From NCBI GenBank assembly GCA_964199315.1, contig OZ116705.1, positions 27,280,001 to 27,344,000 of the forward strand: a DNA stretch of 64,000 nt, given 5' to 3'. Every line of letters starts with the position of its first letter. Position 1 is the first letter of the stretch. A model generated the notes under the pieces. It worked only from the letters and a program-made list of their open reading frames with translations. It had not been told where the DNA came from and searched no databases. Both the position numbers and the translations under genes were made by a program. The DNA is from Orbicella franksi. Lineage: Eukaryota. Shown here piece by piece: positions 1,225 to 24,353 of this stretch.

Positions 1225-2183
1225 CAAGTTTTGCACAATTTTCCCCAATCCAAGGCAGTTTACACGAACATGAAAATGTTTGTTTCTTGTCGTCTGCTAT
1301 ACAAGAACCACCGTTGAAGCAACCAGGAGATGTAGGACTTTGACAACCCTGTAAAGTGTTTGAATTACAATAAAGACAGTTCAGAGCTCAGGATGGTTGA
1401 AGAGATTTGCTAAAACAAATTTTAGTCAGCTAGCAAGTCTGAGGGCAGAAGCTAGATGACTGACACTTCAGGCTAGCACGATATTGGTTATATGAACCTT
1501 ATTTACTTTGTTCTTTGATAGGTTTCTTTTCCTATACACCTGTTTATCAGGAGCGTCAGTTTTTGTAAACACAACTGTTTTAAGAAAGGTTTATTTCGAC
1601 GAATAGAATGTGCCGGACAGTATTCCTTTGACCCTATTTTGGGATAAAAAAGACTGAATTTGAGCCATTCCTTGATGACAGTTCCAGCCTTGGAAAATAT
1701 TAGTGTATTCGTTCCCATATTACAGTGATCAAAGATGTATATCTTCACTTGCTCTGGGGCCAACAGGCACGTTTAATCGAACGGCAAATCCAGGTCCTAA
1801 ATATTTTTGTGAACGATTAGAACTAATGGCTAATTGCTAATAACCTTTAAAAGCAAAGAAAAAGTCACTCCTTGCTGATCATGAAACTTGGTGTTTTCTT
1901 CAATGGGCCCATGCTTGTTCAGTTCGCAAGTTGATTTCTCGGTTTCCTCGGATGCTATCTTGAAATTGGTTGAAGTACACCACGAATTTCTCAGGCAAGA
2001 CCGGCTGCATGAGGTCAGGCTGGGACACTCAAACCTTTTGACAACATGTCCCTGAAGTCGCTTATCTTGCCGCATCGTGAAGAATACTGAACGAAAAAGT
2101 TTGGAATCTTCTTCAGCAGCGTAAACAATGGCATTCACCATTCCTTGAAACAGAACAAAGAACAAAACGGTTTTAGCGTCCAT
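1225..2183 (-). CDS. Secreted PAN/apple-EGF(-fibrinogen-like) protein, paralog A copy 1; exons 1845-2183 and 1225-1348, later exons lie off the left edge of the window
   Basis: Exon 1 (113 codons) has a hydrophobic leader and a PAN-type motif SCSRSCLRNSWCTSTNF...TCELN, with donor AAG|GTTATT. Exon 2 (cag|...G|gtaaga) reads GCQSPTSPGCFNGGSCIADDKKQTFSCSCKLPWIGENCAKL, a six-Cys EGF domain. Confidence 0.85.
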
Positions 2184-2390
2184 TACCTTAAAACAGAATT
2201 CAAAGCGGAAAGGAAAGGTGGACTATTCAAACTTTGAAAGTTTATTGCAAGGAGTGGTTTTGCTTTGCTGTTTTATTTATGTAGTGAAATACAAAGTAGC
2301 AACGATTGGCTTATTCTCCTAAATATACTACTTAAAGATGTTTGATTAGTTGTCCCGCTGTGAGATATCGGCCTGCAGAAATCGCAAGGT

Positions 2391-2560
2391 TTGGGGAAAC
2401 CGTTAAGAGTTCGTATAAACTGCGTGGGTCACTCGCTCGAAGATATCCAAGTGGCAGCGGTAAAGACAGATTTGCCTCAGAGAGACTTGAGACAACGGGA
2501 GGAGATGCAAGACATCTTTAGATACCACACACTTATTCCTTTCGGAATCAACGGTGACGT
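2391..2560 (+). mobile_element. Decayed GIY-YIG endonuclease C-terminal fragment, Penelope-like retroelement (copy 2 at ~27649-27818)
   Basis: The translation GHSLEDIQVAAVKTDLPQRDLRQREEMQDIFRYHTLIPFGIN fits the H(S)..D+.V....R...E...I....TL.P.G(I/L)N tail of Penelope GIY-YIG domains. Confidence 0.55.
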
Positions 2561-3461
2561 TGGTTATGTTATCTTATGGCGCACGCATCCTCGCACACCA
2601 AGTTAGTTTGCATACGAAAGCAAATAATAAGCTGAATCTGGAGTAACAGTGAAACGTAAGACAATTGATGATAGTTTAGCTGTCAGCGGATATTTCCACT
2701 GCACTCAGCCTGTTGAAAACTGTCTGGTTACTTGTACTTTATCCAATTTTTTATCTCATCGAACCGAACTCCAAAACGTCGGACTTAGCACCAACGCATC
2801 GAAGAGCGCAAGTCGTCTGCCATTTAGAAACCTTTTAAAACAGAAGTATATCGCCGAGATCTACCGAGCTTGCAAGTAAATTTTCAATCGCAAAGAGATG
2901 CAAAGAAAAGCTATATTGTCTAATCTATGAGACGCTGTTTATTCGTTAACTGGTCACCCAATAAAACTATATTCGTGTAAAAGTCGGTAGAAAATCGAAG
3001 GGGCGCTTATTAATAAAAACACATTCTAAAGGGGGAGGGGGGACGCTTATTGCATGGATCATTACGGTAGAAAAAGCTGTGGACTAGGATAACTCTTTTT
3101 TTATAACGTTGGGAATTCTATCATACAAAAGAATGTAATATAAAACCACAATGTCTTCTTAGGGATGGAAATTATATTTTTGACGGGGAGAGGCAAGCAA
3201 CTTTTAAGACCTTATTATATATATATTTTTTTTTGGCATGATTTTTTTTTTTTTTTTCGCTTTTTCGCCGTGTTTCTTTCTGGCTGGCTGGTTTTGTGCG
3301 AGTATGTGTTCTGTCGCTTTTTCTTGTACAGGATCGGAATTACTTTGGTAATTGCCCAGCTCCCCTGAAATTTAAGCACTACTTGTGAAAACTATAATAA
3401 TTTCAAAACAACATGCATTTCATAAGACCGTCAAATCTTTGCGTTTTTTGTTATCTTTCAG

Positions 3462-3553
3462 ATACTTTTTCATGTGATGAGACTCAAAAGGAAACAAATG
3501 AGACGTTTCTAAATGGGCAATATTTGCTAACAAATAGAAGCGTGTCATTTAAT
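3462..3553 (+). pseudogene. Orphan exon 3 of a third PAN-EGF-FReD paralog
   Basis: 92 bp, ttatctttcag|AT...AAT|gtaagc, open frame (D)TFSCDETQKETNETFLNGQYLLTNRSVSFN. The flanking intron DNA (~3367-3580) is an inverted homolog of ~24820-25045. Confidence 0.8.
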
Positions 3554-3700
3554 GTAAGCAATATGGAGAAGACATCACTGGCTAACTAGATGAAAGAGAA
3601 GCAAGAAAAACCTGACAAAGGCACGATTTTGTAGCTGATAATTTATGACCCTCTTCTCCAAAAAATGTTTAAGGAATACTAAACTCGCTCCTCTCACATT

Positions 3701-3927
3701 TAGAATGTTCACAGTCTGTCTATTTTTCAACGCACGGAAAAGAAAAAGCGAATCAGAAGCTAGCGCGAAACATGCAGGGATGGGGGTGGGGAGGCGAGCA
3801 AAACGGGCCGAGCCCCTATCCTGTCAAGTCTCCCGTTTTGCGCTGGCGTCCAGTTCTGTGGCGTTTCTACCCACGCGTTCAACGATCAAATAAAAATAGG
3901 AGAAAATAGAAGGTTGAGAACAGTCTA
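3701..3927. mobile_element. Short TAGAC-ended MITE-like repeat (also in copy 2)
   Basis: Ends tagaatgttcacag and gttgagaacagtcta form imperfect TIRs. No clean TSD. Confidence 0.4.
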
Positions 3928-4917
3928 CGCTCATTAGATGTACTGTCACGTGTCAGATGATGGCAATGGATAGACTCTGGTCAGCCGTTAAAACAGCTTT
4001 GTTAATCCGGTTATCAACGGACCACAAAAATTTGGCCGTCTCAACGGCGTGGCCGTATGAAACGGGCTCTTTAAAAGAGAAAATGAATAAAGTGGCAAGA
4101 ATAAAGTGGCCGTAATAACGATATTTTAAAGGAGTTTTAGAAACTCCATTATTTCTGAAATTTATATCGCCGTTATCAATCGAAAACTGATCAAAACTCC
4201 ACTAGATTTACTTTACACTCAGTCCACTGGCCTTGTGTTATCATTTTGAAGCGTTCTCCTCTTTATCGGAACCCCCAAAATAAGGTAAATATTTACGTTT
4301 TAAAATAGCCCTTATGTACATTACGTCTGCACATTACGTTATCCCGTTTCATTCACGAACATTAACAAAATACACGAGTCACAATTACTTTAAGCCACTT
4401 TATACGATGGCTTTTTTTCTCATGAATTGACCAATCTCGTAATAATAGTCGTGCGCTTTGCCAAAGGACAAACGGCTCAGCTTATAGAAGACCCCTAAGC
4501 GTAAAAAAGAGGTAGGGAAACTCGCTAACGGTGTTAATTGCAGATTTGCCGTATAACGTAGAATGTCCAGGACAGAACGCCAGTGTTTTCGCACAAAGGA
4601 CAAATTAATCCCTTTCAATACCCAACAACAGAATGATGAAATAACTACAGAACTGAGAGATCACGCATAGGCTTAAATCTCGAAGTATCTTTTATTCCAA
4701 ATGAGTCAACACTTCAATAACTAAATGTAAACGTGCACAATGCCAAAATACAAAAAGGCTTGAAAATACGGAAATATAGAAGAAAAACGGGCGTTCAGAC
4801 AAATACATATTATGTGATTCTTTCAATATACAGAACAGCAAAAATTACGCCATGTTCTCAATATATGAATACTACTTTCATATGCAAAATAGAATTAACA
4901 TTCATATAGAACCTCTT

Positions 4918-5082
4918 TCTCGCCGATGTTCAGCGGCGAGGTAATTCTGTCTGTATAGTAAAAGAACCAAAATCTCGCCGATGTTCAGCAGCGAGGTAGT
5001 TCTGTCTGTATAATAAAGGAACCAAAATCTCGCCGATGTTCAGCGGCGAGGTAGTTCTCTCTGTATAAGGGACGGAAATCTC
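4918..5082 (+). repeat. 55-bp minisatellite, 3 units (5 units at ~30186-30460 in copy 2)
   Basis: Unit tctcgccgatgttcagcggcgaggtaattctgtctgtatagtaaaagaaccaaaa, with the internal hairpin ctcgccg..cggcgag. Confidence 0.95.
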
Positions 5083-5606
5083 GATGATGATGACGATGAT
5101 GATGATCGTCGGCTAGATTAATGATCCTCAGCGAGATGAATGCAGAAGTACTCTAAAGCAATTCTAAATATATTTCTGTTGCTTTTGCGATCACATAGTT
5201 TAAGACGCGGATGCTGTGTGTTTATATTCCGGACGGTAATTTTTAAATTTTGGAAATCACTTATTATCGGAACTTGAAGTCTAGTAACTGTATTTTGTAA
5301 AAAACTATCCCGTTGCGTTTGCATACGTTGCTTTCATGATGTTTTCCTATCCTACGTACCCTTGCCACTCTTGCCAATCTCGCAACAATTAATCTCTCTG
5401 TGCAGTTCGAGTACTTGCTGTTCTTACAGTTTGAGTGCCAAAAAAGTGATATTTCCCTTTATGATTTAATTTAATCAAAAAACGAAGGTATATGGATCTA
5501 GTGTTCTATCTTTAATCTCTGAAGTTTGCATAGGTCTTGGCCTCTAGAACTGCACAATTCCATTAAACTTTTTATTAAGCGAATAGTACGCATACTCCAT
5601 CAGTTA

Positions 5607-6038
5607 TTAATCAAACAGTCGCACGTCCTTCTCTTCTACAGACTGCAGCCATTTCTGGTCACCGTCTTCAAAATTAACTATATAGCCCTTGGATCTGTTC
5701 CATGCCGCGATGGTGCCCTTTATCCAGCCGAGATATTCAGTGGAGCCATCCAAATTGGCTCGGTTGTATTCTACCTCAAGTCTTGCTCCAATAAGGGCAT
5801 TACCTGTGGAATAAAGTACATGAATGACTCCCACTACATGACATCCTCTTCAGTCATAGTTAATTTCTCTTGTAATCAAAATGAAAACAAAAACGGGCTT
5901 TTTTCTTTTATGATATAAGCTTGCAACAATGGAATCAGTCAAAGATCATTGACCAAAATTATTTTGTACCTTGTCTCTTTTTACCATGCTTTCCGTAGTT
6001 GCAGGCACGTTGCAACTGGCGCCTTTTATCTGGTGGAC
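5607..6038 (-). CDS. Spliced 3' exons (5985-6038, 5607-5803) encoding a Tudor/Agenet-like domain inside the CACT element
   Basis: cttttag|GT CCA..CAT G|gtaaaa then ttccacag|GT AAT, both phase 1. Protein: PPDKRRQLQRACNYGKHGNALIGARLEVEYNRANLDGSTEYLGWIKGTIAAWNRSKGYIVNFEDGDQKWLQSVEEKDVRLFD. The G.R+EV..W..GTI...Y.V.FEDGD.W pattern is Tudor-like. Upstream coding DNA is interrupted by stops. Confidence 0.6.
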
Positions 6039-7430
6039 CTAAAAGATTTTAACGAGTTGTTAACTATATATAGTACGGGGAAATGAGTTTAGGTAGAGCC
6101 CTGTTCGTTTTCTACCCTTTCAATTGTTTAGGATGACTTCAAACATTGACTACATCTATAATAGTTATAGTAGCACTGCGCCTAACTTGTCCTCTACTGC
6201 ATTAGCTTAATTATCAAAGAATCTGAGTATTGCTGCTGCCTTGAGTAGACAGGACGCAAGCCTTGCGCCAGGGGCGCTTAACATGTTATTTTAAATATAG
6301 GTTGAAAATTTCCTTACTGAGGGGAATGGAATTGAAAGCTGCTGTAGTATTTTCATCGAATGTTGGGAAGGCTTGGGTGAAAACAAAATAATCGTCGCTA
6401 GCAATTGTATAAAGCAAATGGTGTTCAAAACACCGATTGTTACGGTGAAATCTAGAAAGGCGATACTTCGAAGGTAATAGGTGCCATTTCCCAAAGCCCT
6501 TGAACAAAGATGCGGGCCAGGTCCCGCACCCGCATCACAAGAACGAGCTTCACATGTGATAACAATAATGCATGGTCTCACATTATCCGTCAATATTATC
6601 ATCTCGAAAATCTTTTAGGAAAATACTAGGGTCGAGGAATTTAAGAAGGCTCGACAATTGACTGAATCCCAATTGATATCACTAAAAACTTTTAATTTTT
6701 GGAGAATTCCCTACCGTCTTCTTTAGGAACATGAAATCTTCGTTTCCTTCTGCGATTATCGTTTCGCCTCCCTCTTGCTTCTTCAGAGTTGTCACGATAA
6801 GACAGCGAAACATTCTTTCCTGCTGCTACAACTTTGGCTGCCTGCACTCTGTCTTCTCGATATATGTTCTCCAGCAAGGGTTCGAGACTGTTTCCTTTTT
6901 CTGGAATTGACCGCTTATTAATACTTTCTACCGGTTTGTTTGTGTTTGGTCCTTTCTCCAGGTTTCCTCAAAGAGTAAAGTGTAGGCTTTTGTAAACATT
7001 CCTAGACACAGTGGTAATGACGTAAACAAAAATGCACAAATCGTTTTAAAAATGTCCTAACAATCCGAATTAATTTCATTACATTTTTAATTGTCAGGTA
7101 AATTCATAGTACTCGCGACCACTTTTGAGTTAGTTTAAGTTTAAGTTTAATAATACTTTGTCATGAAAAACAAAAAGTACATGACTGGAGAATAATTGGG
7201 GGAAACTAAATTGCCATACAAAGAATATTCTCCGATATTAAACATTCTAAAAAATTAAGAAATAAAACTGTAAATTTGAGTGGGGCCCAAAACTAGCCTA
7301 ATTAAATTGCATACTAAAATTGACACTAAAAATTATGAAGTAAGATTTAAATACGGCCCAAAGCTAACCTAATTAAATTGCATACATGTCACTCACGAGA
7401 TACACCTGATCTAAAATTGACACAAATGAT

Positions 7431-7611
7431 CATCGGCGAGACTTTGGTTCCTTTATTATACAGACAGAACTACCTCGCCGCTGAACATCGGCGAGATTTT
7501 GGCTCCTTTATTATACAGACAGAACTACCTCGCCGCTGAACATCGGCGAGATTTTGGTTGCTTTATTATACAGACAGAATTACCTCGCCGCTGATCATCG
7601 GCGAGATTTTC
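7431..7611 (-). repeat. Inverted copy of the 55-bp minisatellite, 3 units plus a partial unit (copy 2 at ~32810-32990)
   Basis: Reverse complement of the left array. Confidence 0.95.
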
Positions 7612-8299
7612 GTTCGGTATATAAGTGAAATTAAATTATCACATATTCCAAAATTTACATAAAATAGTTTCAATCTATATATTTAAACATTCACATAATA
7701 TGCGAATATATGTAAACCCGAGAAAAACTTCTAGAAAACAAAATGTGAAAATTTTTAAAAGGACATGCTAAAAAACAATTGTGTTATCACAGTTTCCCTC
7801 GGTTTCAGAATTATTTCAAAATGGGGGGAACATATTGTTTGGAAATACGTGCAGATGCTTTATTAGGAAATGTTAAAAGCAATGTTTGAATTTACGACAG
7901 GTACCGGAAATTGCGACAATTCAGTGCTACAATTCACGACATAAGTGTCTAGTATTGTCAGAAAAAAAATTACGAGCAGAAGTTTGATGTCAAGCTTACC
8001 TTTCTAAACAGCAGGTTTTACACGAAAGCCAGGCGTTACGCTTAAAATCTGCTGCATTTTGATGCCATCGTCCTGGAATTGCCTCCAATCCCAAAAGCCA
8101 AATTTCAGGAATGACGGACTTATTTTATGGTTAAGATGCAGTTCGTTATCTCTTAGCTTAAGTTAGGATTGTTATACCGCGGTTAAGTTATGTTATAGCA
8201 AGCAAAATGGTTCCAAAACATACGCACAACAGCTATTTCGCGTACCGGATCTCAGGGAATAACATGACTACAATTTCTTAGTTTGGGAGTCGTTGTTAA

Positions 8300-9097
8300 G
8301 GTATCAGTATACCGTACCCCAAAGTTGACCATTTTTCAAAGAAATTGTTTTTCGCTCTTTCAGATAGATCTTTTTATGGTCTTTAATTTTAAAAAAAAAT
8401 TCTACGAAAAAAAATATTAATTCTATGCAAAGTTACAAACGAAAAACGTTTCTTTTCGTTAATTATCTCTAATTGATAGCTGTCAACGGGTTGTCACAAG
8501 AAGTATATGCAAACTTGCAATTGCCGTCTATGAACCAACCGTTTGTGTTCGGTATGGTCGACGTGCTGGTCTGGGTGCCCGGGTCTGGGTGTTCTCTGTT
8601 TGTAGATTGTTGATTTAACCTTTAATATGTCGTCGAAGAAACACAAAAGTTCGTGCCATTTGCAAGCTCGAAGAAAGCACCACGGAGAAAAAGGTCGGGG
8701 GAAAAGGTTTGAAAAACATTCGATCAGAATTGGGCTGATGCGTTAGCTGCTAGCGACAAAGGTTGCTTGCACTGGACGTGGAAGATGTTTGACATTTTCT
8801 ACGCATTACTTTCTTGGTGCTTTCGCCGTTCAAAGCGGTAACATTAATAAACCCATTTCAACTTAATCGGTGTCTCGTGGGTTTCCTTCACGTTGTTTAC
8901 GAGTTTACGTTTTAAAAATCGAAAGCAAGAAACAGGAGCGAAAATTATTCGTTTTTTTTATTTTAATGAATACACCCCCGTAATTAACAATTCCTAAGCT
9001 TTCAGAAAATGTATACTTTACTGGGGTTTGGGTAAAACATCCGACCGTAATGCGGCGTCAACGAATTATGGTCATTTGGGGTATACTGATAGTTACC
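8300..9097. mobile_element. Non-autonomous TIR element, Kolobok-like (copy 2 at 33675-34471)
   Basis: ttaa|ggtatcagtatacc..ccaaa..tgaccat pairs with atggtcatttggggtatactgata..cc|tcaa, a degenerate TTAA target. It contains a short basic ORF start (MSSKKHK..RRKHHGEKGRGKR). Confidence 0.45.
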
Positions 9098-9100
9098 TCA

Positions 9101-9290
9101 AAGGAGCTCAGTCACGGTGTTTTGAGTTATTTCGGCCACGTACAAAATCAGCTTAAAATTGAAAGAAACCTGAGAAAAGTAGTCTACTAAGATAAAAAAA
9201 ACCAAAGCGATAAAAATCACCCATAAAGAAACAAGGTTGGTTAAGGATGGAGAAGATTAACACAGATTACGAACGACACTCTTGAAAGAT
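9101..9290 (+). repeat. Dispersed repeat end, with an inverted relative at ~22745-22932 in iGluR intron 6
   Basis: aaaggagctcagtcacggtgttttgagttattt... matches the reverse complement of ...aactcaaaataccgtgattgagcttctttaa over ~190 bp. Confidence 0.7.
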
Positions 9291-9943
9291 TTAGCGTAAA
9301 CTTTTAGAGGCTCCTCCTTTACGCTTTAGTGTAGTGTATGGTGTTTTGAATCGGCTATTGTGTATCGCTACACGAGAACATTACCAACCTTTCCATCTGG
9401 CTCTGCTGTTTGCCAGTCGAGGTTTGTTTCATTTTGAATGTAATAACGTCAGCATGTTTAATTAGTTACAATGTAAACAATGTTGAAATTCTCTCGTTTA
9501 CGGTTATCTAGCCCTTACAACTACGCGACATCTGTTTTAATAAAGTTGCTGACATTTTACCACAATTTGCCATCTGGCTTATAAAAGAAATTGCTCATAT
9601 TTTGAATCGAAATGTACAAATACCCTGTGCTTTTACTGTCCATCTGTGCACAGGGATCCAAAGCTCCAGCTGTGAGCGACTAAGACTGTCTGGGAATATT
9701 TATGATCGTTTTTAGGGATACTAAAAAGATAAAAATACCTTATGCTACCTCCACAGTACATTGCTTGTTGTCTGTTCGCTTTTCCAGCTTATTTGAAGCG
9801 ATTTTGGTGAGTTATCGTTCCCTGGGTTAAGAAATTGTTTCGCTGCAAAGTTGCTTCCAATCAGCAGAAAAAGCAAACAGACAACGTAACTGTCAAACCG
9901 ACAACTTATTAGCAGCCTGAACTCTAACAGATCTAGAAATCAA

Positions 9944-10009
9944 CCAATCAGGTCTTCTTATTACACTACACGACGGTGGTAGCCATAGAAACACCATTAC
10001 ATTTATAAA
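9944..10009 (+). promoter_or_regulatory. Putative CCAAT box and TATA box of paralog B
   Basis: CCAAT at 9944 and TATAAA at 10004, ~50 bp before the ATG at 10058. Paralog A has a CCAAT on the minus strand at a similar distance (~2305-2309). Confidence 0.35.
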
Positions 10010-10057
10010 TGTGACGTTTTTGGAACAACTTCCCTTTCCAAGACGACTTACCAAGCA

Positions 10058-13000
10058 ATGCATGGCCATAGGCTTCTAGCGTTTCTCCTTTTTCAAGGAA
10101 TGATAAATGTTTCTTATCTCGCGGCCGAAGAAGACCCTACATGGTCTCGCTCGGCGTATTTCACGACGCACGAGAATCAGCGGCTTGAAGGCCACGTCGT
10201 TGAGCAGTTTGAGTCACCTAGTTCAATATCGTGCAGTTATTCTTGTCTGAGAAATCCCTGGTGTACTTCCACAAACTTCAACGTGTTATCCGAGAAGAAC
10301 GACAGAGGAACGTGCGAACTGAACAAGCACGGAGTGCTCGATGAAAACTCTGAGTTTCATGAAAAAGACGGAGTGACATTTTCTTTGATCCAGAAGGTAG
10401 GGCATTATTAGCAAACGTTTTTGACCAGTTGTATTAAGGAAGTTCGCACTGTCTTCCTTTATACGAATATATCTTCGCAAACTCATTAATAATAAATCAT
10501 CAAGTTTAAACAAAGGAAATCATGACCGTGGCGGTGTCTGGATATCTGATCTTAATTTAAAAAGATTTCTCCCTAGTTTTCGTTTCGATTGAGAAGATAT
10601 ATCAAACACTCATGACAGTATTTGACCACACTTCTAAATACCTCGAAGCTCGTCAAACTATTCCGCTGCGCGTCGTATTTTCAACTCACTTCTCGATGTT
10701 TAGAAATGTAGTCAAACTCGGTCTTTCGTGTTTGATATATTACTAACAAGAATACCGAGGCGAAAATTTGCGAAATTTTAAGAATACTTTGAGAGAAACC
10801 GGAGGCTAAGACTCTAAAAAGAATATAATTTTGCCTGTTGAAAATTTCTTTAAAAAAATGCATAATACAATAACATGTTTTTACTAAAACACATAAAATT
10901 CTTCCTTTCTCTAAACGGCAAAACTAGCCAAAAAAACAACAAACTCGGCACTAGCCTTATGCTCGACGCTAACAACATTTCTGCAAAAAGTTGCGTGTGT
11001 CATATGGGGCTTTATTGACTGCAGCCTGGCTCCAAACTTACTTCAACACCATCAAAATCATGAGAATTTCTTTAAAAAAAATATCTAAGAACATTCACAA
11101 GAAGATTTTTAAGCTAACATCGCCAGAAAGAATAGTTATATAAGAACTTTGAGCGTGGGCCGGAAAAACCATATTCTTATTTTAAAAAAAAGAGTGTAAT
11201 CCAGACGAGACTGCTGAATTTATGGTTTGCTTCAAGCTCTCTATCATTACTTTTGTCCATTAGTGGTCGCTTCGTGCTTAGGATAAAAAGTTTACTATGA
11301 AGAGCTCAGTTAAATTTGACAGTTATTTCTAAAAGCGTTGCCTATTCGTCAAGAGATCAGTAAATATGTCATTCTTTGCTTGAAAAAGCTTCGCGTAAAA
11401 AGTGTAATAAAACTTTTGATTATTCATTGGGTCTTTTCAGTTGCCAACCTCCTCTAGTAAAGAGTATGTCAATCTTTGTTTTTAAAGTGCCTCTCGTGAA
11501 AAGCACATGTAGTTGAAGTTGAACATTTCAATCTTCGCACCAAATGTGTTACTCGTGAATAGTTCATGATCAGTAAAATATATCAGCACAGTGTTTCAAA
11601 TGTGCCATTTCTTGTTCCAAAAGGACTTCTCGAGATCAGCGAAGTAAAACGCTTTTCGTTCTAAATGTGTTTCTCGTGAAGAGCTCAGTAAAATATTTAC
11701 TCTTCGTTCTCAAAGCACGTCGCAAACTGGCCCAATAAAACATGACATTTTCTTCTTTCTAAAAGTGCCACGAATGCGCGCTTAAGTACTACGAGAGTTA
11801 AAATGTGCGCTTGTTGAAACCCGGGACCTCCCCTGCTTAATGTAAAATACGGTTCTGTCCGTATAAATTATAGCTTATTCTAATTCTAGCAGTCCTAAAC
11901 AAAGAAAATACTCCCTCAGTGTACCAATGCTCGACGACACAACCTAAAATACTACCTGACAAATTATAGCTTCTTACTAATGCGCCAGCACTGTAGTCGA
12001 TTCTTAATGTTTTAAGCAACAAGGAGAAAAAGCATACCAATGAATTTTTCGTTTGAATCACTCCTTTTTCATCTGCAACGTAATGGCCTGGTAAGTTTTG
12101 GAGGATTTTCCACCGATGGCCTTTTCCAGCTTTTTCAAGGTTTTTTACAAGCCGCAAGGGTGCTCCGGTAAAATTGGATTTTGTTTTTCTGGATCAACTG
12201 CAATCCTCCAAGTCTATTTATTAAGTTTAAACCAACAGAATGATGTCCTTGGCTGTTTCTGGATTTCTGGTAGTTTTGGCATAGATTTTTTTACCATATT
12301 ATTGTTACATTTTCTCCTCTTAAACCCCATTAAGGCTTCGATTTAAAAAAAAGAAAAGAAAAAGATATTTAACATTCTAGACAGTGTTTTTATCTCGAGA
12401 ATCGTCAAAAATTATCTGCTGCGCGTCATATTTTCAGCTCTCTTCTCGTTGATTGGAAATGTGGTAAAACACGGTGTCTCGATCGTGTGTAATGCATTAC
12501 TGCGCATACAGCTACAGATATTCAATTGCTTTTGATATTCTTTTCGCCTGCTATTTTGAACTGTAGGGATGTCTCATAACCGGCTGTCATAATGGTGGCG
12601 TTTGTGTAGCTGACGAGCTGAAACAAACATTTTCATGTTTGTGCCAGGTACCGTGGGCTGGAGCAAAATGTGACATTAAAATCGGTAAGAAATGTAAAAG
12701 CTCATATGAAGGCAACAGGCAGATGCTGTCAATGGTATCGACTGGGTTGAATCACTTCCTTTAACGATCTACTCGTAGGTTTGGTGACGGATTTCCGCTG
12801 ACCCAAATGCATAGTCGTCATATCTTCGATGGTACAGTAGCCCATTTCCAAGTTACCCCAAACCTCTCTATCAAAGCGAGGCCTGGTCAACAACTTTCAT
12901 ATGAAAATGAGTTTACTTTTGCATGTGAATGAAGTCTCATTTTCGTATGAAAGGATGGACACCAAGACTCGCTTTGAGAAAGAGCTAGGCTGAAGGCAAT

Positions 13001-15013
13001 TCGAACCTTGTCGAAGATGGCGGCAGAGGGACAAAGTTCCCGCAACAAACCTTGGAAAAGCAAAACAGTGATGCCAATATCAAATATATCTCAGTGCTAA
13101 AGATAACTTGGAGTAAGACATAATTGTCAACAAATGAAACAAATTACGTATAAGACCGCTTTGGCTATTTGCCAAAGTATTGAATTAATTTTTGACAACT
13201 TTGTAACATCTCTAATTTGTTCATCTTTCAGATGCCTCCACGTGCGACGAGGCCCAAATGAAAGGCAACCAGATGTTACAAAATGGAGAATATCTGTTAA
13301 CAAATGGAAGCTTGTCATTAAAGGTAAGCAAGATTAAAAAATCATTTCTTCCTTGTAATAATATCATAACGCTGCGTGCCGTCTATTGTTGTAGCAGCCT
13401 AAAGGTCGGAACACACGAGGGGGACCAGTCCCTGTGACTAGTCCCTGCAACTGGTCCCCTGAAGAGTTTACACGAAGGGACTGCTCGCAAGAACTTGTCC
13501 CACGAACAGTTCACACGAAGCGTTTTGAGGAACAAGTCGCAGGGACTTGTTCCCACAAATTCAAACTGGTTTGAATTCGTGGGACTAGTCGCAGGGACCA
13601 AACTTTGGTCCCTGCGACTAGATTTTGAAGCAAAAATGGCCAGTTCACACCATGGGACTTCTCCCCGCGACTTCCTGCAGGGTCTAGTCGCAGGGACTAT
13701 CCCCCTCGTGTATGCCGACCTTAAAAATAAAGTGAGCCGTCTGTTGAACTCTACCCTACCCTACCCTACCCTACCCTACCCTACCCTACCCTACCCTACC
13801 CTACCCTACCCTCACCTCCTTCCCTTCCCCTCCCCTCCCTTTTCCCACCTTCCAAACAGCACCACCACAAACACCCTTTTTTAGATCGTTAAGTAAATTT
13901 TACTTCCTTTCTTGCTGCTTATGAGTTTAGATAACATGAGCAAGGAAGCTAAACCTTTTGAAATAACCCCCACGTTGACCAACCGAGTTGTAGTTTTATC
14001 GAGACGTGAATAATGGTGTTAAAACATTTAGGACTAAATTGGCCGACTTTCTCTTTGTTGTCTAAAATGACAGAAAACGATAACATTTCTCTTCCACAAA
14101 TGCATTTTTGTTTTTAGTAGGTGTAACTGTTGCTAGGTGTTGCCATGGTAACCCATTCTGTCATGAAAGTAGTAACAAATTGTTCACCAATGACTGAGCA
14201 GTTTGTCGATACCATAATTGTAGCATCAATTGACAAAGAGTGGCTGAAATGCCTATCAAAGTGCTGGAAACTGTTGCTAGCCACCTTAAAAACCCGTAAC
14301 CTCTATTTACACGTACTACGCGCCTTCAATGTCATCGCTTTAATTCGCTTCTTCCGTATTAGGTGTACTGTCACATGACAGATGATGGTAAAGGATGGAC
14401 TCTGATCGCCCGGTTCTCAAATAGTGACATAAGAAAGTGGATGGTTAAATCCGGACGCTTCTGGTACTTCAAGCAAAAAGCCCTTGGAAACACAACTAGT
14501 CCGTCGATAAATGCCGACATGATCTCTACCGCATTTTGGTTGGTCAGCGGCAGAGAGTTTAAGATCACGCGCAGTGATGACCCCAGTCACACTCCTCTGT
14601 TACAGACCACAGGTAACTGTTTGGCTGGACAAACATTCCGATCAAAAATCACCAGTTATGGCGACTTTAGAAATGGCACGGTTTGGGCCAGTGACCAGTG
14701 CCTGGGAAGCTGCACGGTTCAATATGGCGGTCAGTACAAGTCAACAGACGGGTTTCAACAGGCTGAGTGCAGTGGAGACATCCAAAGCGCCAACAACATC
14801 GGCTTCTGGTGTGACTGGAGTGGTGATGGATCAGTGATGATGATTGGTGGAGGAGGAAGTAGCTGCTCAGGTGCTGATCATGGGATTGGAATAACAGCAA
14901 TGGACGGTGCTTCTTTCTTTGGGAAAGGGGAAACTGAAGATGATTTTGGTTATAATGCTAACTTGACAACCAAGCCATCTCAGGCATACGCATTGAATCT
15001 TTGGATCCACTAA
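10058..15013 (+). CDS. Secreted PAN/apple-EGF-fibrinogen/intelectin-like protein, paralog B copy 1, 399 aa; exons 10058-10396, 12567-12684, 13232-13323, 14363-15013
   Basis: All introns are GT-AG with matching phases; 339+118+92+651=1200 nt. EGF exon GCLITGCHNGGVCVADELKQTFSCLCQVPWAGAKCD. STC..NGEY..VYCHMTDDGKGWTLIARF is the fibrinogen-related N-terminal motif. AATAAA lies ~70 bp after the stop. Confidence 0.9.
10500..10745. repeat. Dispersed repeat family; other members at ~37080-37325 and ~54420-54680, partial at ~12380-12490
   Basis: Shared text gatatctgatcttaatt..gtttcgattgagaagatatatc..gtttgaccac..cgtattttcaactc. Confidence 0.8.
13403..13721. mobile_element. PIF/Harbinger-type MITE in intron 3 of paralog B (copy 2 at 39985-40302)
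   Basis: TAA|aggtcggaacacacgagggg...cccctcgtgtatgccgacct|TAA: TIRs plus a 3-bp TAA TSD, with internal gtccctgcgactag motifs. Confidence 0.8.
13751..13812 (+). repeat. (CCCTA)n microsatellite followed by a pyrimidine tract
   Basis: About 12 perfect units seen directly. Confidence 0.95.
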
Positions 15014-16695
15014 AATGCGATTGACCTTAAGCTACATCTTTAAGCTTCTTTAAGAAATCACAGTGATACTATTAGCAAAAAAATAAACAAAAAGTAACTT
15101 GGTTTGAAATAAATGAATGCAACGCAGGATCTGATGGTAATTGTAAATCAAAATTCTAAGGAATCTTCGTAAAAACCGTGAAATATAATTCAATACTCAG
15201 ATTAGCTTAATTATAATTTCTGATTACAATCAGTCTTTACATTTAATTCCAAATTAGCTGGTCAATAAAAATCGATATCTTAACCGTGAAGTTATTATGA
15301 TAAGTTGGTTGTCCTGTGTAATTGGCATTATAACTTGATGTGATCTTGAGGGTCACATGTTCTCTAAAAGATTTATACTAATAATAAACTCTTGTAGTCG
15401 AAGCGCACAGACATGTATTTCCTTACTCATTTACTTATAATAGAAGTTAAACGATTTACCAGCTTGAATCTGCCGGTGGGCCTTCGACGTGCCGTAGAAA
15501 ACAAAATTTGACTCATAAAATAAAGGAGCTCAGTCATGGTATCTCTTTTTTACCCGCACAGACCTTTTACCACTCGTAGTGCAACGACCACACCTACGGC
15601 CTTGCCTTAAAATGACACTACAAAGCTAAAACGCTGGTACACTTTCACTGTTACTAATCTCGATCGTGAAGACGAAGAATATGATAAAGACGCCGATTAA
15701 ATGTTTGTGTCCAATAGAGGCGATCAAGGCCACTGATATTCTGGGTTCTATGTGCTGGAGGTGGCATCTTAATCAAGGCCCCAAGCTGTCATACAGAGGT
15801 ACTTCCCGCGCTCGTTCGTTACGCGTGCGTCGCTTTTTCATCCTCGTTATTACGCTGTCTTCGACTTTTAAAGCTCGCTTGCCTTTGTCGACGAGACACA
15901 ATAAAAATTAGCCGCTAAACAACAACTCAGCTTTTCTCCACAACCTCAAACCTCGTTGCTTAACTGCACCTTTTTTTGTAGTTGATTTATGACCCAAGTC
16001 CTGATCACAAGCAACTAATATAAGGTAGAGTGTTCGTGAGTTTTATTGAGCAACACAATACTGAGGCACATCAAGCGATATCTTCTCCTCTAATAGAAAA
16101 CTGCATTTCAGCTTGCGGCGTAACGAATATGATGCTTTTTAGTCGTAGATTCATTATGAGAATTAACACAGCCCCGGCCCTTATGTTAGTCCTCCACTCT
16201 TTTCGTTAAAAATAAATTGACGGCATGAGTTCTATCCACTTTACAATTTGACCGATTAGCGTACATGCAGTTTTAGATGTATCAATACTAAAAATAAAGG
16301 TTTCCATTGCTTTAAATTTAACCAAGTCCTGCCGAGTGGTAAATAATCACGAGAAATACATGTACCCCTAGTAGTTATATTGTCTTTTGCAACGGAACGA
16401 AAATTTTCAAACTGTGCTATTTCCTTCATGTATGGCGCTTTCTATTGTCTACACTCTTGAAGTAACCAACAAACATTACCTGCCATTGGATAGTGTATGT
16501 CGTCTTTTCTCTGTTCTAATCTCGTGGCCTGATTAATCAAGAAAAAAATTCATGCAACGATATATTTATAGAATTCGACGTCTTAATTGACGTTCTTCCA
16601 GAACATGTGTTAAGTTTCAGAGAGCGGCGAGACTTAAAGACAAGCTTTCTAAAAACACACGTCGCCGTGGCTTAATAGGAGAGAAAAACTTTGGA

Positions 16696-19600
16696 ATGGT
16701 TGGAGTCGCCCTATTTTTGGCAAAGGTTGTCTTGCTTCTTCTCAAACTTAAAACTTCACCATTGTTAATCTCCCTACTGGCTTTGCATCGTTCGCAAGCG
16801 AGCTACAATGTGACAATATTGTTGTTTTACGACGAAACTTGCGATGAACGCATCAAAAAAGAAGCAAGCCAGCTGTCCCACCAAGATATTTTCCCACGGA
16901 AATCTGAAGTAATCAACTTTAGATGGGTAAAAGTCAACGCAACCAGTATTAATCGCAGTCAAGTTGGAGTATTCAGCACTCTTGAATTTCTAGAAAAACA
17001 CTCCACAACAGTAGATGGAGCAATTTTTATCGACGTAACGCCCGATTCAGTAGCTTTTTCATCGCTGTTGAAAAGTTTACACGTCTTAACAGTTGGTTTA
17101 TTTCAAGAGCAAGGAGGTTTCCGAACTGAGGTAACATAGAGAGATATTTGCGCCTCAAAAGTGTTTTAATTTACCAACTTACAGTTCAAAAGTCAACAAC
17201 AAAAGATTGATTTTAATGCTAGCTGGCAAAATGCTTCTTCGACCGCTCAGCCCGATGCCATCAGTGAATCGAACTTGTCGTTAATTTCCTGTGATACAAA
17301 ATCATGAATTTTTAATAAACTTTTCCTTGTCTTTTTCAATGAAGACTGTAATGCTGGTAGCTTAAAATTACTATCAGTAAGATTTAATGTTCCTTAAACT
17401 TTGAAGGTTTCTTCCCAAACGATTTTGCTAAGCGACTCTGTTGCTCCAACTTGAGGTTTTGAAGATTATTTTCTTTAAGCATGGTGTATCCGCGAACATA
17501 TGCCCCATTAAAAACGCAACCGAATGAGCCACGAAATGGGGAGAAATAATGCAGCTAAAAACATTAACTAGAAAAAAGCCTTAAAAGCCATTGTCCACTA
17601 ATATTTGCACAGTTTTCGGAATTCTGCAAAATTACTTTCGCCAGGTCACTCATAGATATTTATTGAACTATGTAATTATTTTTTCAATTTTCTTACCAAA
17701 TAATCAGTAGCTTTCAATGACATTTAATTAAATTCGTTTCAGTTCTCTTGTCCCACTTTCCTTTATTCTACTTTAGAAATACAGACAACCACTTAGTAAG
17801 TTTATGAAAAAATGTAAGTTTACTACAAGGATCGTGGCATGAATACGTCTCACAACTGTTTCAGATTTCAGTCTTGTTCCGACGTTCCGATTTTAGCTTT
17901 TCTTTTATCTACGTACATTTTTTATACATACATTTTTATTTTTGTTTTCAAATAAAAATAACAATTATCTCAGTAAAAGAATTAAAAGATGTAGAGGCGT
18001 AGAAACGAAACTCAACTAAAAATAAATTAGGAATAAAAAGCCAATAAACTGACATTTCACACGAAGCGTAAAAGGAATTCAAGTGAGAAAGTAAGATGTG
18101 CCAATTATAATTTTCTTACTGCATTTGATCCGGTCAGGTATTACAAATAAAAAGCGAAGTAGAAAACGTAAGGCAAACAGTTGAAAGTCCGTTTCGCCTT
18201 CTTTTAATCCGTTTTTTTATTTTATTCCTTTATTAGGAACATTCTGGTGATTTTACGAGAGTGGTATTTCCATCAATGTTTCGCTACGCGACCTCAGTGT
18301 GGAGAATTATAAAGAAACATGGATGGAAAACTATTTCGTTAGTGCTGTCTGCTGACTACGAAGGCATCAAATTTGTGGAGAGTATGCGAAGCTACGCTTT
18401 TCAGGAGAAATGGCAAATTTTTAAGGTAGTCTGGCTAACGGAGGACCCGATTGGAAATGGCACAGAAACAGAATTAAAAGATGTAGTGAGTAATACGACA
18501 AACGATGTTATTGTTATGCACAGCAGGTTGTGGCAGGATGCGCAGCTCTTTGCGATTGTTCAAGAGCTTGGCCTCAGCAAACAGAAAGCTGTGTGGATTA
18601 TAACAGAAATCACAAGCCACCAGTTTAAGAACTGTCAGAAACTTCCACAGGGACTGCTAAAGATAAGCCTCAAACGTCCAGAAAAACATCACGACTACGT
18701 TATTTACGAAAATGCTCTTCACGATGCCGTCTCATTGTTTCAACTTTCCTTTGAAGAGAGTTTGAAAGAGTATTCTCTGAATTTCAATGTAGAGGATTGT
18801 GAACAAAGAATCACCCGTGACAGAATAAGGCGCATTTCCAAAAGGTATCTGTCTCTCAATTTCCAACCTTTGTTTTCAAATATATTTCCACCAAGAGAAG
18901 ATCAAGGTGGAATCCAAGTCCCTCTTAAGTTATATTTAGACATGGAGAGTCCAGGAGAGTTTCTTGAGACTACCTGAGACGAAATGGCGGAAAATGTGGG
19001 GAAAAGTCTTTGATCCTCTCTTTATTCTCACTCGTTTTTCTAGATGTACAAGTCTTTGTTCATGATCAGTTTTTGAACGACATCGTCTTCAATGTGCCCA
19101 TAAATCGTGCAGCTTTTGTTCTAAACGGGTCTTCCTCTCTCCCAATCCCTTTTAGCTTTCGCTAAAGTTAATTTTCTGCTAAATGCTAACACATGCTGTA
19201 TTTGAAGGCCTAGCTTGAAGATAGCATGAATACCTATATTTAGTTTCGTGGGAGAGGCGAGGAATGGTTCACTCTGTCCATGACCAATGAGCATTCGAAT
19301 AGAAACGCATAAGAGATAATTTCCCAGGCAATTTAACCTGATATTTACATAATTTTACTGTGCAGATACTTGACACAGATATCATTGTCGGGGCGAAGTA
19401 TACTCTTTGATCCTCTTGCGCTCAAGAACAAGCATCCCGCTTTTACAATCTGGAACCTGAAGAGAGACGGAGATGGTGTAAAGAAATGGTTCCCTGCAGG
19501 AATGGGTGCAACCACTGGCCTTGCTATGGAGAAATTCACAGCACCTAACGGAACGCTCATAAAAGCCGCTTCTCAAATTCCAAAACGTGTTATCCGCGTG

Positions 19601-22600
19601 GCCGTGAACGATTATCCTCCTCTGGTCAATAAGATACCTCCTGGTGTCGGAGAAGAGTGCTTTGGGAGGTTTGTGGCGTGTTATGAAAACAGCCATAAAG
19701 ATATGTCGGCTAACATTCCACCAAAGATGTTTTGTTGCTTCGGTGCTTCACTGGACTTTTTGTCGTTTCTCCAAAAAGACCTTAACTTCGAAGCGTATAT
19801 CTATTTTACTCCCGATGGGAAATACGGAGTGTACAATGATAGCGCTGGTAAATGGAATGGCATTGTGCAAGAGCTGATAAGTGGTAGGGCCATGCTTTCA
19901 TTAGAAATGGGTATGAACAGCAGGCGAGCTGAAGTGCTGGGATTTGCTCATCCAACGCTACTTTTGGAGCTAGGCATCTTGATTAACGAGGATGGACACA
20001 AAGGTAAGTACCACAAGTAAGTAAGGTAAGGTAAGTTCCACAAGTTGCTCGGCAACTTTTTGGCAACTTCTCGTATTTCGAGCAACGTTTCTCGTCTCCA
20101 GCAACTTCTTACATTCTGAGCAATTTCTCGTTTTCTACCAATTCTGAGAAATCGTAGCAGCTTTTAGTGCTTAAATTAACCTTTCTTCCATATTTCACAA
20201 TGATTTGCCTTAATTTGCCTTGATTTTGTGCCTTAACCTTTCAGACATAAATAGAGATTCTTGGCTACACCCCTTCAGCACAGTTTTATGGTTGTGTCAA
20301 ATGGCAACTGCTTGCATAGTCTTTGTTGTAATATGGTGTCTGGACCGGAAAAGCCCTCAAGGCTACTATCATGTGCTCAAGGGCAGTGATGAGGACGGAT
20401 TCACATTACTGGGTAAACTGGCTTCTTGTACCGTGACAAGAAATTACTGACATCACCCCTCTGAGGAATCGAAATCGGTCGTGTCTCTACAGTGTAATGC
20501 TCATGATTTTGACGGGGGAGAGGTAGTTGGTGACATCGGAGAGCGGTTGAGAACATGTTTGATGACATATTGGCGAAAACTCATTGATACACAGATGTGA
20601 CCTTTTGATCTCGTTGAAGTAAACGTTTCTTTGCAGAGGGGACCGCTAAGATAGACTATGAGTAGTCCCTCTTTCGCTTGCGTGACGTGAAAGAAACCCT
20701 CGAGGAAAAAATGGCCGCGCGAAATCCTGGGGGCGAGAAGCGCACAAAACGAAGTCCCCGCGCGGCCATTATGTTTTCTTTTCGAGGCTTTCCTTTACGT
20801 CAGGCACGACGGACTAAGCGAAAGTGGAACTACTCGTAGTCTACCGCTAAGATGATGAAACCGTTGATTAAGCGGAGTTCGCGTGTTATTGAAAGCCGCC
20901 GTAATACCGAATGAGCATTTCCCATTTCAGTTTGTACTAATTTAGTTATTAGTATAAGTAGGTGAAAAGCTCTCCCAGTTTCTTTGGCCATTTTGGGCGA
21001 TGTTTGATCTCTGACATTGTTGACCTTCCAAAGAGAATTTCACAGAGTCGCCCGCTTCCCGCCGCTGGCCAAGGGGAACAAAGGCTTTGGGTATGAGGTT
21101 GAGCGCAATGAAGGCGGGTCCCAGGTTAGCACTTTCAAGAGCACTCGATCTTCATTTTTTAACATTGTTTCTTACTGTTTTGGCAGATTCCATCAGTTAT
21201 GTTGGCGGTGTGGCGTTTGGTAAGGATATCGGCCCAGTCAGAACTCCGCTGAGCACAAGTTCACGGCTCGTGTCCTATGTCTACTCATGTCTCGCTCTCG
21301 TCATGATCAATTCTTACTGCGCTAACCTCATGGCGTTCTTAGTCGAAGAAAAAGTCGGTCTTCCCATAACTGGCGTTCGTGATCCTAAGGTACGTGTGTA
21401 TGCGCTGTATGAGTGCATGAATGTTAATGTTCCAAGTTATCTCCGCGCTTTTTCCGACTCTAACTCAAAACTGGTACTGCGCTTGAATTTGAATTGACCA
21501 ATAAGAATACACCTACAATCCTGGTCAAAAATCTTGGGACAATATGCACTTTAGCCAACACATGGAATTTCTGTCAACCTCCCCCACCCCACCCCCAGCA
21601 CAATGTTGCTGCTGATCCATCCAAAGTAGGCCCACTATTGTAAGATTGCTTTGGCGCGCGGGGGGGGGGGGGGGGTAGGGGGGCATCACCAGTTGGCATC
21701 TTGTCAAGTGTTTCAAGGAAATCTGGCCAGGATTGTAGTCTGGACGGTTGCTCTGAGAAATGTTAAATAAATTGAAAATGCATGTAGAAGGATAGTGAAA
21801 AACAGTGCCTGTAGAGAAATCTGAATGTATGTAAGAATTTTTTTTCTTAGTAGCATTCATTCGTGAGGCAAATGTAGTATGAAAACGAGAATAATTGTTT
21901 GACCTAATCATTTATGATTCCCATAAGAGAAACGAGGTTAATGAGGAAGTTTGAGAGAAAGAGATTTTCGGACAAAAAAAACGACAACCTTAATTAACAT
22001 AATTTGCCGAAGAGAGACGAGCAGAAATTGGTGCTCAAATAACTCGTGCCAGTTTCACAGTCCTCTTGTCTCGTTCCCAGATCATCTCTGAACCTCCAGA
22101 GTTTAAGGTGGCCGCTGTGCGAGGTTCAAATGAAGAAGATTACTTCAAGCATCATGTTAATTCTTCGTTCCGTAAAATTTATGATGTCAACTTGCGAAAA
22201 AACAGTGTGACAAGCTTGACATCAGGAGTCGAACAGTTGAAGGCAGGGTATGTTTGATTTAGTTAAATATTTCTGTTCTGATTTCACTTCTTTACCCTTA
22301 CATCAAACTTCCAAAAATGACCGCCAAGTTCCAAAATTAATGATCCTCGAATTAACATCCTTTTGCCTACCGTTGTTTCAGGAGAGGGTTCGCTAAGGTT
22401 TCGCTTATCTCTTTTCAAATACTGTACTGCTACGCACGTACCCAACGGCGATAATCTAAGTTCACTATTGCACTGCTATGTAACGGACATTTTTTAGGCT
22501 GAATGTTTCCTGGGTCCTGTGGACAATGAAACTCTCACAAGACTAGGCAAAAACCCCACTAGGGTGATGATGGGTTAGACAATGCATTTCCTTCCACGGG

Positions 22601-23554
22601 CGACATCCCTCACCAGGGAGGGAGTAAACTGACTAGGGAATGTTTCAGAATTCTCTAGGATATGGAGGTCTCCATATGACCCGGGCAGGCCAGTCCTGTT
22701 AAAAGGAGGTGGTTTGTGCGTCTTGAACAATTTAGCCTAAATGTTTTAAGTTCGTCGTTTGTAATCCTTGTTAATCTTCTCCATCCTTAACCATCCTTGT
22801 TTCTTTACAGTTTATTATTATCTCTTTGGAGTTTTTCTATCTCAGTAAACTACTATTTTCAGGTTTCCTTCAATTTAAAGGTAATTTTGTCCGTGGCCAA
22901 AATAACTCAAAATACCGTGATTGAGCTTCTTTAATCGCTATGTGTCACTGATATTCTTCCAGGACTATCGACGGCTTAATAGGCGACTACTTGTCTCTCC
23001 GTCACATCGCCAGCACAGACAAGGACTGCAATTTCATTTTGATTAAAGAACACTCTCTCAAGTCAGGCTACGGTTTTGCCGTCTCTAAACATGGCATGCC
23101 ATGGCTGCAAGAGATTTCCCTCTCGGTCTTAAAGCACCAGGAAAACAGCACTGTGAAGTCGATCGAGGAGCGATGGTTTCCCAAACAGACCTGTGGAAGA
23201 AATGAGCACCGACCTCTGAAAGCCATCGACTTTGCTGGCCTCTTCTGGGTTCTTGTCGGAGTGGCCGCTTTTTCGTTGCTGGCCCTTCTTGTAGAAAGCC
23301 TGTTGGTGTTTACCTTGATCAAATGCGGTAAGTGCCTGGGACCGTTTGGAAGGCTTTTGAAAAGATTCTTGTTTGATGTGAAGAAAGGTGAAGAGGATTA
23401 CTTCACCTTGCAGTATCGTCCAGCTGGGCTAATGGCGAGAAGCTGGACAGTTGAAACGACCAATGAGGATACCACACAAGAGCAAACAAGTTACGAGAAC
23501 CAGGGCTTTGTCGATATCGGTGAACTGGAAAGAAAAATCGCTTCCTTGCGATAG
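16696..23554 (+). CDS. NMDA-type ionotropic glutamate receptor-like subunit, copy 1, 936 aa; exons 16696-17130, 18237-18844, 19366-20003, 20245-20412, 21187-21389, 22081-22247, 22963-23554
   Basis: All introns are GT-AG and the phases give 2811 nt in frame. It has a signal peptide and ATD, S1 (TPDGKYG..GKWNGIVQELISGRA), M1 (LHPFSTVLW..LDRKSPQGY), pore loop (VAFGK), M3 SYCANLMAF, S2 (GSNEEDYF, IGD, SGYGFAV, W..EISLSVL) and M4 (DFAGLFWVL). Confidence 0.92.
20652..20843. mobile_element. Mutator-like MITE in iGluR intron 4 (copy 2 at 47369-47560)
   Basis: ccgctaaga|tagactatgagtagt...actactcgtagtcta|ccgctaaga: TIRs and a perfect 9-bp TSD. Confidence 0.8.
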
Positions 23555-24353
23555 CCTTTCGGAGCGGCTTAAGACCTCATTTAAACGGTCTCGGTTCCCC
23601 CGCGTCTTATTGAGAGAATTGGCCGTTAAGATAGTTTACACCCAAAAAAGCGCCATTAGTAACTACTTTAGATGTAACAATTTATTAAAAACCTCTTGCA
23701 GAGTGAAAACTGACTTAATGTGGACTGATACTTCGTAACGGCCCACGTTACAAAAATTTCCTAAATACACAGTCAATATCTTGCTGCAATGTTGTATCTA
23801 AGTTATTTATTAAAACTTTTTTATGTATACTTTCTGATATTAAACTGCATTCACCGCCTTACAAATTGACTGTTATTCATTTTTCTTTATTTGTGAAATA
23901 TTAAAAATTAAACCAGTCATAAAAAAAAAAACAGCACAAGAACGGCTGGCATGATTCAAATGGGAGCTGAATATCTCGCTTTTGTTATGTATACCAGCCA
24001 GCACTTATTCTCGTGTTCTGTCAGTTGTGATTTCGAGTTATTTCAACATGAACAATTTCATGGTTGCCACCGACATCATTTTTCCAAATACCCTGACTCT
24101 TACAGCCTTCCTATTCGTGGGGGGCGGGAGGGTTTTTTTTTGCTTGCCCTCCCAGCTTTTCTTCCTTCTCCTCCCTTCTTTTTTTTAGGGAAAATGCATC
24201 TTGCATTGGGTATGTTTCTTGGAAGAAGCTACTTTTTTATCATTATCAATAAGACCATTAACTAAAGCTCTTCATAACTTATGTTTTAGGGCAACTGTGC
24301 CACCCACAACGTTAATAAATAGGGTATCGATTTTTTACCCAGGCCATAAATAG

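Follow-up and report, generated by a model that had tools for sequence, protein, structure and literature searches.

Among ionotropic glutamate receptors (iGluRs), the NMDA subfamily includes a cnidarian class, NMDA-Cnidaria, named by Ramos-Vicente et al. (2018, eLife; PMC6307864). In that paper, changes in ligand-binding residues are described as especially common in this class, and ligands were predictable for only two of its nine members, the authors leaving the other seven unassigned. Where NMDA-Cnidaria genes are otherwise mentioned in the literature searched, they are called uncharacterised, and no functional test of any member was found there. Here we analyzed a 64,000-nucleotide stretch of the coral Orbicella franksi (GCA_964199315.1, contig OZ116705.1, positions 27,280,001 to 27,344,000, forward strand), referred to below as the window, whose own numbering we use. 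The window contains an intact iGluR gene at 16696-23554 (+). On balance, we favor the view that it encodes a full-length ligand-gated cation channel subunit of the NMDA-Cnidaria class, with an amino-acid-like ligand and a pocket that would disfavor free glutamate.

The exon model was built using a Nematostella protein as guide (P0013; XP_001639888, 985 aa), and the junctions were then read directly in the DNA. Seven exons encode 936 aa with no internal stops, and every intron is GT-AG. The window has about 40% GC, as eukaryotic DNA, and the seven iGluR-like open stretches on its + strand follow the order amino-terminal domain (ATD), S1, M1, M2-M3, S2, M4. The iGluR architecture is present: Pfam ANF_receptor, Lig_chan-Glu_bd and Lig_chan fall on successive exons, the PDB matches are full-length NMDA receptors, and the hydrophobic segments of the protein are the N-terminus, M1, M3 and M4. 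Cysteines 446, 453, 471 and 472 align with the loop-1 cysteines of GluN3A and GluN2, and Cys762 and Cys817 form the S2 pair, a sequence pattern from which the bonds are predicted. The M3 gate, S-Y-C-A-N-L-M-A-F, keeps seven of the nine residues of SYTANLAAF. The pore tip F-G-K aligns with F-G-R of GluN3 and, unlike GluN1 and GluN2, has no Asn at the Q/R/N site; since GluN3 also lacks this Asn, its absence does not exclude the NMDA subfamily. Word-index protein searches with P0013 and P0094 (10 and 2 proteins returned) gave no coral protein and no annotated product of this gene.

A first-pass annotation, made by eye from the sequence, had proposed an NMDA-type subunit with a remodeled ligand pocket on the basis of three motifs. 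All three (LEMGMNSRR, RGSNEE and LIGDY) lie where it placed them, in exons of one + strand gene, and because the gene is real, chance is not the issue for these motifs. We mapped the residues by profile alignment. The S1 exon matched the ligand-binding domains (LBDs) of GluN3A/3B best (HMMER, E 6e-15) and then GluN1 (4e-10), with E-M-G on S631-F-S633 of GluN3A (P516-L517-T518 of GluN1) and the second Arg on R638/R523. Exon 6, which begins S2, was too short a query alone and gave no iGluR match against the PDB, only chance leucine-rich-repeat matches. P0013 aligns to the coral gene without gaps at both S2 motifs, and HMMER placed its G-S-F-E-E on Q-S-S-V-D of GluN1 and E-S-S-A-E of GluN3A, and its V-G-D on I-W-D and I-M-D, respectively. 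In MAFFT alignments of 20 and 9 sequences, the columns agree with the HMMER mapping.

The resulting map, from GluN1 to the coral protein, is F484 to Y501, P516 to E528, T518 to G530, R523 to R535, S687 to S700, S688 to N701, V689 to E702, D690 to E703, W731 to G747, D732 to D748 and S733 to Y749, with E702 occupying the position of GluN2 Thr690. One residue is deleted directly before position 516, a change common to the whole clade. Both members of the amino-acid anchor pair, Arg535 (GluA2 485, GluN1 523) and Asp748 (GluA2 705, GluN1 732), are kept. Proper alignment thus did not restore canonical residues: the retained alpha-carboxyl Arg and alpha-amino Asp, the Thr-to-Gly change in the APLTIN motif, the Ser-to-Asn change, the Glu at the GluN2 Thr690 position, and the Gly in place of the Trp or Tyr before the Asp all stood as first described. 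The first-pass annotation missed P516E, S733Y and the clade-wide nature of the pocket. Its description of the pocket as roomier overlooks Tyr749 right after the Asp, where the aromatic bulk may have moved from 731 to 733.

A different register for the second S2 motif was considered owing to a report of Tyr at 732 in a Nematostella gene. The register with Tyr749 on D732 was rejected: the HMMER alignment of P0013, the gapless strand before the Asp and the spacing to the S2 disulfide cysteine all put Asp748 there. Asp748 lies 14 residues before Cys762, as in the GluN3A and GluN2 rows of the alignment, which also supports its assignment to D732. The reported gene is v1g219279 (Seljeset et al.; bioRxiv 10.1101/2023.08.03.551817), an identifier given for GluNCni2_Nve (985 aa) by Ramos-Vicente et al. 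(PMC6307864). P0013 and the GluNCni2_Nve entry in the source table of that paper agree in species, in length (985 aa) and in signal-peptide cut (19-20), and they were matched by these features only. P0013 reads V-G-D-E at the D732 site, not Tyr, so either the gene models differ or the published alignment is shifted, and the match of P0013 to GluNCni2_Nve is tentative for this reason.

We next consider where the gene falls in the NMDA subfamily. The maximum-likelihood tree held 29 sequences, with three AKDF outgroup sequences, a single GluN1 (Lingula) and no epsilon or lambda sequences. The NMDA subfamily separated from the outgroup with support of 100/100. Lingula GluN1 branched first, and a cnidarian-only clade (99/98) was sister to bilaterian GluN2 plus GluN3 (95/94). 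Inside the cnidarian clade, a 100/100 group united the coral gene with P0013, with three paralogues of its own genome and with two orthologues of other species. Bilaterian GluN3 made its own 100/100 clade with the coral gene outside it, so the gene is not a GluN3 orthologue. The tree, the best PDB matches (GluN3A/B and GluN1), the four loop-1 cysteines and the S2 cysteine pair all support the earlier assignment to the NMDA subfamily, and the phylogenetic check it had called for puts the gene in the cnidarian clade. The gene would belong to a cnidarian-only NMDA expansion that fits the NMDA-Cnidaria class, a link made through the likeness of P0013 to GluNCni2_Nve.

Judged against what the available text of PMC6307864 says of NMDA-Cnidaria, the coral gene shares the cnidarian-only placement, with the 985-aa Nematostella protein matching GluNCni2_Nve as the closest full-length relative found. 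It also has altered ligand-contact residues of the kind described for the class, where the ligand is unpredictable, and, three positions beyond the Gly of the pore tip, an acidic residue (Asp in G-K-D-I-G) close to the 'Q/R +4' site of the reported cnidarian acidic residues. It differs in that many members are reported there without the Arg or the acidic anchor, whereas the coral gene retains both, and its signature E-M-G / S-N-E / G-D-Y is not spelled out in that text. GluN3A and GluN3B (PDB 2rc7, 2rca) resemble it in the S1 match, the lid Tyr, the S2 frame R-x-S-x-x-E-D-Y, the four loop-1 cysteines and a basic residue after the pore-tip Gly (G-R in GluN3, G-K here). However, LBD identity to GluN3 is only ~28%, the coral gene branches with cnidarian genes and carries the deletion before 516, its gate is S-Y-C-A-N-L-M-A-F, and GluN3A residues S633, S801, A802 and M844 are Gly, Asn, Glu and Gly. 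GluN1 is the best PDB match of the last exon and shares Arg523, Asp732 and the disulfide pattern, but the coral gene differs from it at T518G, S688N, V689E, W731G and S733Y, has no pore Asn and shows ~25% LBD identity to Lingula GluN1. A separate GluN1-like gene also exists in the same genome: at G000:C2:22935374-22936113 (-), an exon is 83% identical to Lingula GluN1 across M2-M3. This locus is likely, from that similarity, to be the coral GluN1 orthologue and a possible partner subunit.

The pocket is conserved among relatives. The lid Tyr, an acidic residue at 516, Arg523, Ser687 and G731-D732-Y733 occur in every coral paralogue and orthologue, and Glu689 in nearly all; position 518 varies (G, A, S), as does 688 (N, Q, I; F in Nematostella). 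The pocket is therefore not a quirk of this one gene but a signature common to the coral paralogues and a class-level oddity already published. An intact orthologue (L002), with a product of 928 aa, matches the coral gene in its seven exons and their phases. The two LBDs share 67% identity, and the pocket-lining positions are identical at 14 of 14 (chance ~0.004 by our own arithmetic). The ratio of nonsynonymous to synonymous substitution rates (dN/dS) was 0.22 against L002, where dS is saturated, and 0.22 against a closer relative (L006), where dS is 0.32. Other samples have four listed exon variants, every one of them synonymous. These comparisons indicate that the derived pocket (E528, G530, S700, N701, E702, G747, Y749) is held by selection, and its conservation in an intact orthologue argues for a working pocket rather than decay. 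The three paralogues, at G000:C10:13.40-13.46 Mb and G000:C8:26.52 Mb, include two that lie head to head ~40 kb apart on contig 10. All three have the Y-C-A-N-L-M-A-F gate and the G-D-Y motif, and they differ at pocket positions 518 and 688.

In GluN1, Thr/Ser518 and Ser688 both hydrogen-bond glycine, and in GluN2, Thr690 holds the gamma-carboxylate of glutamate. On the reading we favor, an amino-acid-like ligand would be gripped by Arg535 and Asp748, with the usual clamshell closure. Structural knowledge of GluN1 and GluN2 suggests that the backbone can still make its contacts at 516, 518 and 688 and that two side-chain hydrogen bonds (T518, S688) would be altered. Free glutamate would be disfavored, since Glu702 stands in place of GluN2 Thr690 and its negative charge is expected to repel acidic side chains. 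The fit of glycine would also be altered, since the W731/V689 packing is gone. Together, these changes would leave a neutral or cationic amino acid or an amine as the most likely ligand, which we infer and which is not readable from the sequence. A ligand that is neither glutamate nor glycine is plausible on these residues. The GluN3-like pore tip (Gly-Lys where GluN1 and GluN2 have Asn) suggests that the subunit probably works within a heteromer; its partner may be the GluN1 orthologue of this genome, and the GluN1-like gene on another contig makes such a pairing possible.

Several observations weigh against this reading. Pocket residues predict the ligand of an iGluR poorly, even among close relatives (PMC13648236), and Tyr749 could refill the space left by Gly747. 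A spliced transcript was not seen, as no joint in contigs of three RNA libraries matches the predicted junctions; these contigs follow the genomic sequence through introns as well as exons, at low depth, and were not counted as expression. No reads of a polyA run of a related coral fell on exons 2-7 (the exons in the stretch examined), the raw reads being confined to intronic repeats and to a stretch past the stop codon. In another species the orthologue (L007) is a pseudogene: it has a frameshift, its exons contain three stops, and Gly530 is replaced by Arg. The reading frame also shifts inside an exon in two short contigs, L001 and L006, of other species. The gene is therefore dispensable in some corals, and some lineages have lost it. 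The first-pass suggestion of an uncharacterised cnidarian chemosensory or transmitter receptor stands as regards the uncharacterised cnidarian class, while no expression or chemosensory evidence was found. Overall, its interpretation is partly supported.

Some further signals were seen in and around these loci. In introns 4 and 6 (20622-21009 and 22562-22949), summed RNA-contig depths run from thousands to ~93,000, and loose ends and odd joints are numerous; this coverage looks like copies of abundant transcribed repeat elements, not the transcript of the gene. Just past the stop codon, polyA reads are ~68 deep at 23726-23900, with first mates on the + strand and zero depth on the last exon; a repeat, or a separate transcript from the opposite strand, is the probable source. 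In L007, a 932-aa reverse-transcriptase open reading frame (RVT_1 and SAP) lies at 6368-9166 (-) in the intron just before the S1 exon.

A bolder form of the favored reading places the gene in a chemoreceptor-like family and makes its product the first receptor of the NMDA subfamily whose gating ligand is not glutamate, glycine or D-serine; an amine, a gamma-glutamyl compound or a basic or neutral amino acid could take that role. This form would follow from the kept Arg/Asp anchor, the extra carboxylates at 516 and 689 and the Gly residues at 518 and 731, and we regard it as possible but tentative.

Somewhat less probable, and in our judgment unlikely, is that the gene encodes a GluN3-like subunit for glycine or D-serine (a small neutral co-agonist), in which the changes retune glycine binding instead of replacing it. 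The best structural matches of S1 are the glycine-binding domains of GluN3A/3B, the S2 frame R-G-S-N-E-E-D-Y closely parallels R-E-S-S-A-E-D-Y of GluN3A, and the lid Tyr and G-K pore tip are GluN3-like. Tyr749 may fill the Gly747 cavity, and Ser at 687 (GluA2 653) is a 'glycine-type' residue under the rule given in PMC6307864. However, position 689 (GluA2 655) is a charged Glu where glycine binders have a non-polar residue, Thr/Ser518 and Ser688 are both changed, and for seven of the nine members the class authors could not name a ligand.

Next, the subunit could be agonist-free, its own Tyr749 and Glu702 occupying or locking the cleft so that it is constitutive, purely modulatory or a ligand-inhibited partner. 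In most iGluRs the residue after the anchor acid is a small one (Ser, Gly or Ala), and residues 732-733 control cleft behavior in other iGluRs (bioRxiv 10.1101/2023.08.03.551817). In the same study, Trichoplax AKDF19383, with Tyr at 732 and 733, gave a constitutive current inhibited by ligands, and GluN1 D732L/F gave glycine-independent receptors. The coral gene resembles AKDF19383 in its bulky Tyr after the anchor acid, Tyr733 is present in all the coral paralogues as well, and the M3 gate is altered. Unlike the Trichoplax receptor, which belongs to the AKDF subfamily, the coral gene keeps Asp732, and the Trichoplax effect required Tyr at 732 itself. Strict conservation of Asp732 and Arg523 is also hard to explain without a bound amino-acid head group, and we consider this explanation improbable.

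The gene could instead be silent or being lost, its odd pocket having no present function in this coral. The missing spliced RNA, the uncovered exons 2-7, the L007 pseudogene and the frame changes in L001 and L006 would fit such a gene. Bulk RNA often fails to show neuronal or sensory receptors, though, and the 936-codon frame is intact with canonical introns and the dN/dS of 0.22 reported above. The gene also lies in a duplicated block (Table 1), and the 10.26-kb gene-bearing segment differs between its two copies at 60 sites, all outside the exons; the variants from other samples are uniformly synonymous. We rate this explanation as quite improbable. An ordinary GluN2-like glutamate-gated subunit is the least probable of all, since the Arg, the Asp, the lid aromatic and a branch sister to GluN2 plus GluN3 are outweighed, in our view, by Ser-Asn-Glu in place of the Gly-Ser-Thr triad of glutamate binders, a carboxylate at the site of the ligand gamma-carboxylate, and Gly where GluN2 has Tyr730.

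Table 1. Exons of the receptor gene and copies of the surrounding block, in window coordinates
Feature	Position	Strand	Evidence and details
Exon 1: start codon, hydrophobic signal-peptide-like N-terminus, ATD start	16696..17130	+	First ATG of open stretch; donor GAG|GTAACA; aligns to P0013 N-terminus; hydrophobic aa 1-19
Exon 2: ATD	18237..18844	+	Pfam ANF_receptor E 6.7e-10; splice sites read
Exon 3: ATD end and S1 half of LBD	19366..20003	+	Pfam Lig_chan-Glu_bd E 6e-14; PDB GluN3A/B E 6e-15
Exon 3, loop-1 cysteines			Cys aa 446, 453, 471, 472
Exon 3, lid Tyr501	19823-19825	+
Exon 3, L-E-M-G-M-N-S-R-R	19901-19927	+
Exon 4: pre-M1 and M1 helix	20245..20412	+	Hydrophobic aa 574-592; aligns to P0013 M1; weak Pfam Lig_chan E 0.029, under family cut-off
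Exon 5: M2 pore loop V-A-F-G-K-D-I-G and M3 gate S-Y-C-A-N-L-M-A-F	21187..21389	+	Pfam Lig_chan E 1.6e-9; aligned with GluN3 L-F-G-R-T and S-Y-T-A-N-L-A-A
Exon 6: S2 start	22081..22247	+	Alignments via P0013
Exon 6, R-G-S-N-E-E (S700, N701, E702, E703)	22120-22137	+	Alignments via P0013
Exon 7: remaining S2, Cys762, Cys817, M4 (aa 832-850), ~85-aa C-terminal tail, stop	22963..23554	+	PDB GluN1 E 1e-9
Exon 7, L-I-G-D-Y (G747, D748, Y749)	22976-22990	+
Block copy 1	1..24114		Self-BLAST, difference map; block ~25-26.7 kb
Block copy 2	25044-50828		98.0-99.4% identical to copy 1; N gap 40316-40571 inside
Second gene copy	43413..50269	+	Coding sequence 100% identical, 0/2811 nt differ

Either the block was recently duplicated in tandem (a segmental duplication) or the assembly placed two haplotypes one after the other. 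The copies do not differ over the 4.2 kb at 17695-21932. Upstream of the window, a third, partial and more diverged copy (L008; G000:C8:27270001-27280000) includes an exon-1-like piece 91.6% identical. Inside the block, + strand open stretches upstream of the receptor at 9989-10408, 12567-12761 and 14363-15010 encode a PAN/apple domain (E 6e-6), an EGF domain (E 1e-7) and a 216-aa Trp/Gly-rich domain without a Pfam match. Their domain content makes them likely exons of a secreted or adhesion-type gene adjoining the receptor.

This gene adds a member to a known, functionally unexplored class, and the finding mostly repeats the class-level observation of 2018. It is a reasonable candidate for a functional test, being full length, with a constrained pocket and an anchor that many class members have lost, and its genome also carries a possible GluN1-like partner and three paralogues whose pockets differ by degrees. 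Paralogue variation at 518 (G/A/S) and 688 (N/Q/I/F) may reflect tuning to different ligands; if so, this tuning and the birth-and-death pattern of duplicates and a pseudogene would bring the group closer to a chemoreceptor family than to a synaptic receptor. A ligand other than glutamate and glycine, if true, would widen the known chemistry of the NMDA branch and would bear on how corals sense amino-acid cues.

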